A stretch of DNA of 64,000 nt, taken from contig NW_026936399.1 in NCBI RefSeq assembly GCF_032062105.1, forward strand, positions 372,001-436,000, written 5' to 3'. The position numbers were made by a program, and so were the translations under genes. The DNA comes from Saccostrea cucullata. Its lineage: Eukaryota. A model generated the notes under the pieces. The model saw only the letters and a program-made list of their open reading frames with translations, did no database searches and was not told the origin of the DNA. Within the stretch, counting starts at the first letter, position 1, and the number at the start of each line of letters is the position of its first letter. This document shows positions 37,674 through 43,299 of the stretch, in pieces.

Positions 37674-38193
37674 TTGTTTAGAGGTCTGTGTTTGACTGCT
37701 TCTGAGTTGTATTCGTTGAATGGAATTTCGAGCTTGAATACCGTTCGTCATTTAAGCATTGGGATGTCTTTGGTCCTATAACAGACCTGGCCGTGCTGAC
37801 AAATTGAATACCGCGCGTTAGCGCGGTATGATAATTTGTCGGCACGACCAGGTGTGTTATAGGACCGAAGACATCCCAAAATATGAATTCAATGCTTATA
37901 TTTACATTCTTCAATTTTTCCCTATCTGTAAATGTTATTTTTTAATTCCGTATTTAAATTCCGCGCCATTCAGAATCGGTGTGTGTCGTAAAGAGCCGAT
38001 CAGCTGCTGACATACGTCACCAATGAAAAGTATAGTTCTTGTAAATAACAATAAAAAAAGCATATTTTTGGCAAAACTAATTTATTTTAAACAGCAATTA
38101 ACAGTAATAATGTTTATAACAACTATCAATGTTGTGTTTTTTGTTTTAAGCTTAAAAAGATAAAATGTTCAAACTTCAATGCGTAATAACAAA

Positions 38194-40916
38194 CTATACA
38201 TGAGTGATACGGTCCTCAGTCGTCATTTTGAATTTAACGAAAGTTAAATGTGCAGCCGCTGAAATTTGCATTTGTGAAGAAACCAGTCGATGGCTGAATG
38301 TTTTGCATGTAGTCGATGTAGCGAGGTTCAGCTCAGATGTAGGTGACAAGGACGGGAGAGCCATGGTTTCTCGTGGTGAGTTTTCAAGTTGTGGCGATTT
38401 CAAAACACGAGGGGGAGGTAGAGCTACTGTTGTAGATGGAGATGGGAGTGAGACAGAAGCCATGGAAGAGAGGGAATGGCTGAGAGTTTTCTTCTGGTGG
38501 GAAGAGAGGGATCTGTTATAAGATCTGAGGGAACTTTCATTCCTGTGGTTTGACATAAACATTATATGCCGTGCCTCGTACCCTTGATCGTTGAGGTATG
38601 TAATGGTTGTGGCCCTTAAACAATGTGGGGTGTATTTACGATCCACGCCAGCAGCTACGCAAATTTCTGCTAAAATCTTACTGAATGTGCGCTTTTGAAG
38701 GGGTTTAGCTGCAAACCAAACATTAGGATCTAATATTCGATCCTTTAGGTACTGGTTAAATAGACTTGTGGCATTTTTATCAGTTTTTGATATGAGCATC
38801 TTTAGTAATTTAACTGGGCAGCAATTGTTTTCATCATCAGTTGCGTACATCCGCTTCTCATTGTGGGTACCATGTGCTTCAACCCCTCCTTGATTATTCT
38901 TTTGCATGGTTTCGTGTTTTAGTGCAGCATACTCTCCAGTCTCATCAGAGGAAAATTCAAAGCTGTCGATTTTCAACTGAAGGTGAAATTTTAGCCCTCT
39001 TGTCACGAAATGGATGGCCAAAAAGTACCATACAGCATGACGTAATATTACTGGTGATGATGACGCACCTTTGAGTAATCCGAGATTCCTCTGACTATAA
39101 CCCCCGCTTTTATATTATGACTTGTGCGGGGGAGAGTCAGAGCGGACTCCATATTGAAAACTGGGAATCTGGCGAAACCGGCTAGTGTCGCGACTCTGCC
39201 TACCTTTTACAACTTTATTTCGCGGAGCTAACTCCCTAGATGCGAGAAATCAGTAAAATAATTATTTTACTACTTGTTAATCATCATTAAAAGGATGCTA
39301 CCGCCGTTTAAACGGTCCTATCACCGACAAATGAAGCATCACTTGAATTAGGTCGGCTCCTTGCCATTCGACTTCTTTGCGTATGACGTCACACACAAAT
39401 ACACAACCAAAACTATCACGTGAAAATATCATGTTTGGTGTTAATGCTGTTTTTAACCGAATTTTAGCATAGAAGTCGTTTTTGACAGTTGCTTTCCTTA
39501 GAAATAAATAAATGAAACATCATTATATTGTTTTATGTATTTTTTCACGACACTTTCATATTTTTCCGAAAGGTCCACACGTGTTTTGAGCACATGTTAC
39601 TTTGGAATTTTGTGTATTTGTGTGCTGACGTCATGCGCAAAGAAGTCGAATGGCGAGGAGGCGACCTAATTCAAGTGATGCTTCATTTGTCGGTGATAGG
39701 ACCGTTTAAACGGCGGTAGCATCCTTTTAATGATGATTAACAAGTAGTAAAATAATTATTTTACTGATTTCTCGCCTCGCGAGTTATCTCCGCGAAATAA
39801 AGTTGTAAAAGGTAGGCAGAGTCGCGACACTAGCCGGTTTCACCAGATTCCCAGTTTTCAATATGGAGTCCGCTCTGACTCTTCCCCGCACAAGTCATAA
39901 TATAAAAGCGGGGGTTAGAGTCAGAGGAATCTCGGATTAACCTTTGAGGTACTGATATATCTTTTGTAGATCATGTATTTCAATAATCTCTTTGTGTTTC
40001 GTAGGCCTAGACAGGCCAAGCTGTGTCTGCTCTTTGAAAAGGCCATCCAAGATTCCATTTGCTGTGCGAAATTCTTTGTCCTTTACTACATTGACGTCTC
40101 TGCGAAGATCAGCTAAATGGCGATTAATGGCTGCTCTGATGTTGATGAGACTATTTTTGTGGTACAAGGATTTGTCATCGTCATGTTTGCCTTTTGGCCT
40201 GGCCTCGCAATAGAACTTTGACAGACGATTTGAAAGTGTTGGGATCTACTGTCAGCATGTCCAGAGAGGTACCAAATACTTCTATGTTCCAGTCTATAAA
40301 TTTTAAAATGAACCTATTTAGTTGTGTGTGAGATGGCATTGTGTAACTTTTGGAGTCATGTATTTGTTTGAGCTATTAATACAACAAATTTTGACTCGTG
40401 AAAGATTTATACAAATGTCAATTTGCAGCCTAGATACCTTGAAAAATTCTTATCCCCCATGCTGTGTTTCATTTGGTTGTTTTTGCGTGTCTAGATTCAA
40501 ACAGTTTATCCATTTCTTCAGTTGTTACAGTTTTAAATCTCTGTGAAAATGCAGGTTGTTTTATTTAGAATCATATTCAACTTGGCCCATGTTGCATAAA
40601 TTGTTTAGGCCCTACATAAAGTTATAATTGTTTTACTTTATTTTGGAATTTCATAAATAATTAAGTAAGAAACATTTCTTATAATTACTAATTAAGAAAC
40701 TTAATTCTTGCCAATAATTGCTACCTTTGCTTTTGGTTCATCAGAGGAACTGGTTGTTTCAAGCAATGGCACCCCAGGTTTTACTTTTAGATCTACCTTT
40801 AAATTACTGATTCCTGAAAAATCAGCAAGAGAGGAATTAAAACCTGTGTCGGAAAACAGTTCAAGAATGTCCATATCCTCAAAATTTAAATTAAAATTTG
40901 GTTGAAGTTCATCCAT
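38194..40916 (-). pseudogene. Crypton tyrosine recombinase (DUF3504/ZMYM-KCTD1-related fold), intron-containing, disrupted
   Basis: Catalytic signature R (HFVTRG) ... HCLR ... NH ... SLRSY. N-terminal exons 'MDELQPNFNLNF' and 'RFKTVTTEEMDKLFESRHAKTTK*NTAWGIRIFQ|DWN'. Premature TGA at about 40480, frameshift at about 40238, insertion at 39076-39939. Confidence 0.9.
39076..39939. mobile_element. 864-bp foldback/MITE with about 330-bp TIRs and 9-bp TSD (Mutator-like)
   Basis: TSD acctttgag at 39067-39075 and 39940-39948; termini taatccgagattcc / ggaatctcggatta; arms nearly identical. Confidence 0.95.
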
Positions 40917-43299
40917 TTTGACTTTATGTATATTTCTATTTGTTTACATTTAGCAAACTACATCTACATATGTAGATCTAGTTGTGTATTCATACGCCGT
41001 GATTAAGTTTTGAGTGTGTTATAGGAATTTGAATGTTTTGGATTTCCAATGCATTTCTTTGGTGAGAATTACACTGAATGTAAATATTTCCATATATTTC
41101 ATTCTTTAAAAGAAATAAAAATTATCAAAACAGCAATAAGCATATTACCTCTACATATTTCTTGACCAAGGCTGTTCTATCCATGAAAAATACAATCACG
41201 TACATACCATAACTACAATATTTCATTTACCAAATCCTACTTTAAATGGTTATAATGTACATAAGTATAAACATTAGAATATCTTTGTTTGTTAGTAGGG
41301 TAATTAACGTTAACGTTACATGTATTGCTGGAAAAAATTACAAAACCCGCATACGCAGGTTATGCCTTTTTTCTGCATCAGCGGCAAAATTAATTACCGT
41401 ACTAACAACCCAAAGAAGGTATTTTATTGTTTAATAATACGACCTTTCAAAATTAAGGTAATAGTCGTAGTCAATGAATGGATCGAAGGAGCAATGATTG
41501 CAGAATTGATGGACATGATACTCGAACGACAAACTATGTGTTATTTGAATCTTTACGTTGTTATGCTTACGTTTTACTGCTTAGTTATTTTTGAAATAAA
41601 ATGCTAAAATCAGATTAAAGTGTGAAGATTATTATCAATCAAATATACTAAGCTGTGTTCGCAAAATAAGGCGAACATTTCAAACCTTTTTTTTTAAAAG
41701 AGACCAATTTTGAAGATTTAAATTATCTCTCCAGAAAATCATTTTTAGAGTATAAAAGCATTTTGGTAAAATTATTTTTGTCAATATCTCTATTTCACTG
41801 GTCATTAGATGCATTCGTGATTAGAACCTAATCAACTTGGGATTTCATTTGATCTCTGAATATAACCACGAGGCTCTAATACACAAGATTAACTATTAAT
41901 TCCTGCCTTCAATCCGTTTTACTATAAGAATCCTTGTATAAGATACAGGAGTGGTTTTTAGTCGATACGGATTTGAATGCGCCGATACAGTCAGCAGCTC
42001 CTCCATTTACTGACTGCTCGATTTATATGCCAAGATTTGCTTCAAATTTCTGCGGATATTTTTAATTGTTTTCACATATGTGTTTATATCAAGATGTTTT
42101 AATTCATTAATAATGTTTTTATGTCACTTATTCCTACACTGTAAATTCAATAACACTTCAAACGTTTTTTTTTCCTTTTATGATTACGAACAGAAACCGA
42201 AACAATGCAAATTTGGAGCACAGGAAAGACGGGCTTCCAATCAGTTAAGAGGCATAAAAATGTGCATGTTACATAGAGCGGACTCTTTCGTATCGAATCA
42301 ACTGGAAGATATAAACCCCATATGCAGGTGTTAAGGGTATATTGCTAAATAGGTATTGGCATAGTTTGTTGACCATATATATATAGCCACATAAACACCA
42401 ACAAGAAACAAACAACGTTTTATTTTGCATGTATGTTTCCTCTTATTATTTAAGAGACTCGTACATGTACCCGTTTGTGCATATCTTCGGCTTTCTTTAA
42501 ACTTTATATCAATCTCTCTTATATTCCTCCCATACTTATATGTGTTAACCGCCAACTATATAACCTGCACCTTCATCATCACTTCTCTTACAGCCTATTG
42601 TGACTATCTTCATCAGTCACGTATTAAATTGATTAACAAAGCTTTTATACGTCTTCCTGGTTTTTAAAAAAAATGTACATGTTAACAATCCGTAAATCTC
42701 TTATGCTCTCATACAGTAAAAATAAGATCAGTAGCCAAATGTGTATAAATGAATTGCAAAACAACTGTAAGAAGCACGTAGCACAATTGCTACGGTAACA
42801 AAGTTTAGCTATTATTTCCCCCAAGAGAACAATGCTCAGAAGATATCAAAATTGGTCCCTTGTTAACAAAGGAAATAAAACATAATCTTAAGTTTCTAAA
42901 GAAGGCTAGTTTCAAATTCAGTATTGATTTTGGTTTACAGCATTCACAGAAAAAGTTTGAAGGATTAGAGAAATTTTGTAAAATCTCCTTACTTTGATTA
43001 ATTTTTTTAATCAATCTTAACCTTTAAAAAGTCGGTTTGTTACATACATTTCCTTGTGCTTATGCATAAAATAATGAACGATAGATAAAATTATACTCAT
43101 TCGCTGATTTTTCTCCACAAGGAAAAAAACCCTTCAGTTTAGTGCAAAAGAAACTATAGAGAAATCAAAGTTCTTTTTCTGCTACCTTTGTTTTTAACTT
43201 AATCCGAACTCTGAGACAAACATAATTGCAGGTGTTTGATAAATGATGAAATTGTTCCAAGTGTCACCCAAAAATAGATATTTAAAAGAGCCATAACCT

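Follow-up and report, generated by a model that had tools for sequence, protein, structure and literature searches.

A conserved terminal hairpin and a covarying internal box in Cryptons of the bivalve Saccostrea cucullata

Introduction

How the ends of animal Cryptons are recognised has been an open point since these transposons were first described. No terminal repeats of any kind have been reported for them (Kojima and Jurka 2011, PMC3212892), and the boundaries and repeats of CryptonA elements were still undefined in the Glomhopper 2026 study (PMC13465315). The question is raised in a concrete form by a Crypton copy in the genome of the bivalve Saccostrea cucullata, which lies within a stretch of 64,000 nucleotides (assembly GCF_032062105.1, contig NW_026936399.1, positions 372,001 to 436,000 of the forward strand) that we call the window and to which all positions given below refer. 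The whole copy occupies 37752-41087, as defined by the copy boundaries in other genomic copies and by the empty site seen in paralogues of the host repeat. Close to its left end it carries a 20-mer (37890-37909) that an earlier note on this DNA took for an inverted copy of the element's own circle junction. What is this internal site, and what does it have to do with the two ends? We find that it forms the inner foot of a hairpin conserved at the terminus, and that the box just inside this hairpin covaries in sequence with the opposite end of the element.

Results

The left end and the internal site

The letters of the window read attt-AAGCATTG at 37750-37761, GAATGTAA-atat at 41076-41087 and CAATGCTT-ATAT-TTACATTC at 37890-37909, just as the earlier note had placed them, and the last of these strings is the exact reverse complement of GAATGTAA + ATAT + AAGCATTG. 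Even with up to 3 mismatches allowed, this is the sole match in the 64-kb window, where 0.05 matches are expected. Other genomic copies reveal what the window copy has lost. In all of these the left end reads TT-AAGCATTG-AATTCATATTTT-GGGATGTC, and the window copy is without the middle 12 nt, which should stand between 37761 and 37762. With these 12 nt restored, the left 157 nt form a single palindrome that starts at the terminus, with arms that are perfect over 65 nt in a consensus built from a non-coding short derivative and used solely to gauge conservation. The fold predicted for the terminal palindrome has -63 kcal/mol (z -14). In the window copy the palindrome covers 144 nt of the plus strand (37754-37897), and its apex loop, GTTA at 37817-37820, is closed by a G+C-rich clamp.

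Because the restored 12 nt extend the palindrome to the terminus, the letters CAATGCTT(A) at 37890 simply belong to its far arm, and the additional match to the right end beyond it amounts to only about 11-12 nt (37898-37909). The internal site on the plus strand thus has three parts: 37890-37897 pairs with the left terminus, 37898-37901 is an ATAT spacer and 37902-37909 is complementary to the right terminus. The site is kept in at least 25 of 29 copies, and the intact plan of the element is that the 12-13 nt just inside the palindrome are complementary to its last 12-13 nt. The internal 20-mer forms the inner foot of this terminal hairpin, which is conserved. When the two ends are joined, in a circle or in a tandem, they make one long palindrome across the junction in which only the TT at the crossover is unpaired.

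Two further matches were seen in this region. In the abundant short derivative the complementarity to the right end resumes past the internal box, after a small mismatch, for 11 nt more (AAGGAAAATTA; L070:1485-1700), and this extra stretch is missing from autonomous copies. A 13-nt motif of the inner hairpin arm, GTGTGTTATAGGA (37852-37864), recurs in the right-end region at 41014-41026, and related motifs (TGTTTATATA..) stand some 25 nt inward from the right ends in other Crypton families; this motif may be a further binding site or the trace of an older, longer inverted repeat.

Ends, junctions and target

The two bases TT that precede AAGC (37752-37753 in the window copy) belong to the element. 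They are near-invariant among true left ends, at about 48/51 for position -2 and 54/55 for position -1, they have no partner in the internal site, and both positions are present in all tandem junctions. At the other end, the right terminus (41076-41087) consists of GAATGTAA followed by ATAT, which is invariant in 47/47 right ends, the flanks diverging after it. Five paralogues of the host repeat run uninterrupted through the insertion point (..GTCAT-CTCC-ATAT..) and show no target duplication, and the empty sites (n = 2) lack 6 nt, not 4, relative to the occupied sites. In an empty allele of a short copy, found in contigs of public runs from the source organism and two other organisms, exactly 579 nt are skipped, with 5 nt fitting both sides. 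This short derivative (L006:1104-1682; G000:C21795) is thus an insertion polymorphism, and the family has therefore been active recently.

Head-to-tail junctions with full units on both sides give the same measure. All nine have a 6-nt spacer, ATATTT in eight and ATATCT in one, and a 4-nt spacer occurs in 0/9. From the paralogues, the empty allele and the tandem junctions together it follows that the element spans TT to ATAT and that the junction spacer is 6 nt. The 4-bp core assumed by the earlier note is thus replaced by a longer one, and its claim of an exact complement holds for the string GAATGTAA + ATAT + AAGCATTG but not for the true junction, which has two extra T. Since the internal spacer is 4 nt, the internal site corresponds to the complement of the junction minus TT. 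In the predicted fold of a tandem junction (-69 kcal/mol, z -17), pairing runs across the junction and the TT is left as a 2-nt bulge. At the window copy itself, the placement of the crossover is ambiguous within the ATTT common to both sides (37750-37753 and 41086-41089). A simpler delimitation, with 12-bp inverted repeats and an ATAT or TA duplication around 37898-41087, was considered and rejected, because copy boundaries, tandems and empty sites all put the left end outside the palindrome.

The paralogues, the empty allele and the flank logos agree that integration takes place at short microhomology without target duplication. The logos give a target of approximately (A/T)TAT|TT, at which the target-derived positions agree in only 44-85% of copies. 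So sharp a change, from invariant ATAT and near-invariant TT to a loosely kept target, is to be expected of a single strand exchange rather than of a 6-8-bp heteroduplex. In the right flank, a T stands at the 12th base past GAATGTAA in 44/47 copies, often as TGA, and the recombinase appears to read a target half-site about 8 nt from the crossover.

Short copies often adjoin one another, either head to tail, where the spacer is exactly 6 nt, or tail to tail, a few bases apart (L015:598-1757; L070:935-2660). It seems that the end of an existing element is favoured as the site of the next insertion. The sequence that hosts the window copy (37600-37753 and 41088-41260) belongs to a dispersed repeat for which there are hundreds of candidate copies, and the best copies of its left part stop near 37680. 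The earlier note had called it the tail of a Penelope element that rejoins across the Crypton without target duplication. The rejoining is borne out by the five paralogues, but the name Penelope stays unverified, as the nearby frames contain no reverse transcriptase or GIY-YIG domain in Pfam.

The same plan in other families and species

More than 150 recombinase matches, at 35-60% identity, were found in the genome, and the same terminal plan is present in at least 11 families, with 37-60% protein identity to the window copy. In several families the frame is open over 400-430 aa. The families compared were A, B, C and F and those represented by contigs C91, C13386, C19859, C18323 and C14010, with C21821 in part only. 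All share a terminus TT-(A/T)A(A/G).., a palindrome of 149-169 nt, then ATAT (ATCA in family B) and a box of 8-9 nt; the length class of the window palindrome recurs in 13 other elements. Homologous proteins led to contigs of the scallops Argopecten irradians and Pecten maximus and to one metagenome contig, which follow this plan as well, each as a single copy. Their right ends are candidate matches of 10-11/12 that were located without copy boundaries. The palindrome was not found at one further scallop locus (L113), and in family F the palindrome is present and the right end was not found in the 1.1 kb examined.

Within a family the palindrome arms are 83-97% complementary, while between families they are only about 50-65% alike; it is the structure, or pairing, that has been kept and not the sequence. 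The apex keeps its form in the same way. In 11/11 informative elements it is a G-N-A or G-NN-A loop on the plus strand above a G+C clamp, and the letters of the loop vary among GAA, GTA, GTTA, GTAA and GCTA. That the hairpin might be the insertion of an unrelated neighbour can be ruled out, because its position does not change between the families and species examined.

The comparison also disposes of another explanation, that the internal site arose by chance or by a recent local duplication and has no meaning beyond the window family. A fortuitous match would be eased by the A+T-richness of the sequence and by the self-complementary ATAT spacer. However, the plan recurs in 11 families and at least three species, the box covaries with the right end as described below, and only 0.05 matches were to be expected in the window; chance or local duplication is refuted by these families, and we regard it as scarcely tenable.

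Covariation of the internal box with the right end

Within the window family the sequence close to the ends is conserved throughout, and the box was accordingly compared between families. In nine families the right end differs from the family's own box at 0, 1, 1, 2, 1, 1, 0, 0 and 0 positions per 12, the cross-family mean being 2.7 mismatches (permutation p = 2.5e-5, a figure that includes three single-copy families whose right ends were found by way of the match). In six families the right ends were set independently by copy boundaries, namely the window family, A, B, C18323, C14010 and C19859. The boundaries fall where the match predicts them: copies of C18323 begin at query position 157-159 (predicted 159), those of C14010 stop at 194, as predicted, and those of C19859 begin at 70-74 (predicted 73). 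Among these six, box and right end agree at 70/72 positions, and the families' own pairing stands alone at the top of the 720 permutations. The sequences that agree are different ones (GAATGTAA, AAGTGTAA, AAATGTAT, and AATTAAA with spacer TGAT), and the one family with the deviant spacer TGAT has it at both the internal site and the right end. As the earlier note had expected of a genuine third site, the internal sequence is thus conserved throughout the copies and families examined and covaries with the right end. The reliable mismatches between the two number three, and all have a G of the right end facing a T of the box on the plus strand.

Such covariation could arise in more than one way. 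The box and the inner hairpin arm could be a third recombinase-binding site in double-stranded DNA, an accessory site that aids synapsis or directionality, made catalytically dead by its 4-bp spacer and tracking the right end because the same protein fits both. The match of 12-13 bp, sharply bounded in most families, is as long as a binding element would be; tyrosine recombinases commonly have accessory sites, as for TnpI (PMC2847244), and each family has its own recombinase. This explanation nevertheless leaves a 157-nt palindrome that is kept by complementarity and not by sequence without a reason, as it does the polarity of the loop on one strand and the sharp crossover; in addition, a single binding specificity would predict that the two terminal boxes, left and right, are inverted copies of one another, and they are not. 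We therefore consider a duplex accessory site rather unlikely, but the main alternative.

The match might also be a by-product of copying, in which right end and box are templated on each other in every cycle, by hairpin-primed synthesis or by repair in the folded palindrome, without any role of their own. The near-perfect identity of box and right end even where families differ would suit such a process, and in DIRS elements the tips are rebuilt from an internal region in a like manner (PMC7192593). Against it, the element has neither a polymerase nor a reverse transcriptase, the unpaired terminal bases, as read from the letters, would mismatch a self-primed 3' end, and the tandems are head to tail and not inverted dimers. 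Templating without function appears improbable to us.

Copies and short derivatives

The genome (1.17 Gb) holds a few 2.5-kb relatives of the window copy and more than 1000 candidate short derivatives of about 580 nt, in which 170-235 nt of the left end and 105-118 nt of the right end survive. In the shortest of the abundant non-autonomous copies, the left end reaches only to about 10 nt past the box. At least three further families (C18323, C14010 and C19859) have abundant short derivatives of their own, which share about 110-260 nt of the right end, and among the repeats of the Saccostrea cucullata genome non-autonomous Cryptons seem to form a major class. More than 1000 candidate copies, together with an insertion whose empty allele survives, fit a copying mode of transposition. 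RNA reads cover both strands, and most of them continue into unlike sequence. Among the contig joints on a short copy, the only clean joint is the empty site and the joints that go back are messy; tandems in the genome would in any case mask circles.

The orientation of these copies bears on another proposal of the earlier note, that the internal site is an inverted recombination site which flips the terminal 140 bp or the arm that contains the reading frame. Each of these segments is indeed flanked by two inverted look-alike sites. However, the apex has one orientation in all informative short copies (24:0), the body has the same orientation in all of about 45 copies, and the internal spacer is 4 bp as opposed to 6 bp at the real junction. 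No copy was found with an inverted body or beginning at the internal site, L046 being merely truncated. An inversion switch is accordingly very improbable, and this part of the earlier proposal is not supported.

Coding content of the window copy

Both its protein and the way in which it integrates place the window element among Cryptons of the DUF3504 (CryptonA) kind. Its recombinase is encoded on the minus strand. The C-terminal part of the frame (38194-39075) carries the catalytic H-x-x-R, H and Y, which can be read in the translation, and the open frame at 38194-39021 matches Phage_integrase (PF00589, 5.7e-11) and DUF3504 (PF12012, 3.7e-10), both above the curated cut-offs of Pfam. An upstream part of the frame lies at 39949-40200, also on the minus strand, and further N-terminal pieces lie beyond probable introns. 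Inside 37752-41087, the only frames of at least 80 aa are the 275-aa recombinase piece and a 105-aa frame on the opposite strand within it, and neither a reverse transcriptase nor another transposase was found among these frames or by Pfam. The relatives of this Crypton, at 2.5-2.8 kb, have space for one gene. The earlier note's identification of a Crypton without reverse transcriptase is thus upheld.

The window copy is dead, since a nested element splits its frame, and its left arm is short of 12 nt. The nested element (39076-39939) is a foldback element of 864 bp with inverted arms of about 315 nt; it is foreign to the Crypton and absent from intact relatives. It lies inside the recombinase frame between two copies of a 9-bp duplication, ACCTTTGAG (39067-39075 and 39940-39948), which suggests a Mutator-like non-autonomous foldback element.

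Discussion

This study demonstrates that the left end in a lineage of bivalve Cryptons is a long palindrome whose pairing has been kept while its sequence has changed, and that the box at the foot of this palindrome follows the right end of the element from family to family. The polarity of the apex loop, the three mismatches with G opposite T and the crossover at a single point suggest that the hairpin is formed by one given strand. Loops of the form G-N-A or G-NN-A give unusually stable DNA mini-hairpins, and a G+C-rich centre hinders the extrusion of a cruciform from duplex DNA. Indirectly, then, the strand-polar loops, the bulged fold and the sharp crossover hint at recombination on a hairpin substrate.

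We propose tentatively how such a substrate might be built. One specific strand, the plus strand of the window and antisense to the recombinase gene, would fold so that the stem of the hairpin presents the left terminus as a duplex and the internal box pairs with the right terminus. Both ends would then adjoin on one continuous splint and form a duplex recombinase site, in which the tyrosine recombinase would exchange strands at the single point ATAT|TT; a single strand would be released or inserted, and replication would complete the event. That box and hairpin stem jointly hold both ends of a single folded strand for the recombinase is, in our judgement, an evenly balanced proposition. The fuller proposal, that transposition of bivalve Cryptons proceeds through one folded strand of DNA on which hairpin and box build the recombinase site, is plausible, although we would place it somewhat below even chances. 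The earlier note had suggested, among other possibilities, that the internal site could splint a single-stranded intermediate, and of the ideas considered we infer that this one fits the data best.

Several points weigh against the proposal. A match of 12-13 bp is also as long as a recombinase binding element, and covariation of this kind could come from recognition by protein. The internal site falls 2 nt short of an exact complement of the junction. For the other species and for the three families with a single copy each, the right end was placed by means of the match itself, so that agreement there is circular. The pattern of G opposite T consists of three cases, the crossover logo comes from one family of fixed copies, and the polarity of the loop could be partly inherited. 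Finally, no circular or single-stranded molecule was seen in the DNA runs, which are assembled contigs, and no circle-specific joint was listed among them.

Whichever explanation holds, the analysis offers a precise and testable cis-architecture for the recognition of animal Crypton ends: exact ends, a 6-nt junction spacer, a crossover point, a target preference, a hairpin of constant length with a strand-polar apex, and a covarying box. With these features, the annotation of abundant Cryptons and their short derivatives in mollusc genomes becomes straightforward, and a direct test is now possible of whether a eukaryotic tyrosine recombinase works on single strands that are folded.

Parts of this architecture have counterparts in several known systems. 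Elements of the IS200/IS605 family, such as IS608, have subterminal hairpins, make no target duplication, insert beside a short T-rich motif and have their ends base-paired with an internal guide on one strand. The Crypton resembles IS608 in its hairpin near an end, its lack of target duplication, its T-rich target and, as proposed here, the recognition of an end by pairing. It differs in its enzyme, which by Pfam is a tyrosine recombinase of the integrase fold and not an HUH (Y1) transposase, and it is thus no member of that family.

Closer in enzyme are the folded sites of bacteria. The attP hairpin of the CTX phage is a folded single-strand site at which XerCD makes one strand exchange. Likewise, the integron attC is the folded single-strand site of a bacterial tyrosine recombinase (PMC2727003). 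The likeness extends to inverted half-sites about 100 nt apart that fold into a mimic of a duplex, to an unpaired centre, to strand selectivity and to one exchange with a sharp crossover. In contrast, those systems are bacterial and obtain their single strand from conjugation or from a phage. We know of no mechanism of the attC or CTX type, on a folded strand, in a eukaryotic transposon; if the proposal is true, it would be the first.

The window element is like other CryptonA elements in its single DUF3504/Phage_integrase recombinase gene, its microhomology, its lack of target duplication and its abundant non-autonomous derivatives (PMC3212892, PMC13465315). It differs in having a conserved terminal palindrome and an internal box complementary to the other end. 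The published trait of animal Cryptons, that they have no terminal repeats, does not fit an element with a 157-nt palindrome and a 12-13-nt subterminal inverted match; the palindrome thus departs from the published description of Cryptons, but not from their definition by protein. A literature search, whose scope did not extend to Repbase reports, returned nothing relevant on a hairpin, palindrome, stem-loop or foldback in Cryptons, and we could not find a Crypton with this terminal architecture described in the literature searched.

The comparison that the earlier note had drawn, with the internal complementary region of DIRS retroelements, proves apt, because DIRS elements too have in their interior a stretch in which the complements of both tips adjoin (PMC7192593). 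This region has been shown to be essential for DIRS-1, for which the model of Cappello 1985 was tested (PMC7192593). The recombinases of the two kinds of element are related and, in DIRS, the region is thought to bring together the two ends of one strand. The differences are nevertheless considerable. DIRS has reverse transcription, long inverted terminal repeats and a region of 88 nt, whereas the Crypton is without reverse transcriptase, its site has 20 nt and is 2 nt short of the junction, and its repeats are adjacent, as a hairpin, and not terminal. The Crypton is therefore no DIRS-like element, and what the two have in common is only the complement of the junction. This feature nonetheless links Cryptons to the DIRS internal complementary region, and if the proposed mechanism is true, the hairpin and box of bivalve Cryptons would be its DNA-only counterpart and possibly its forerunner.

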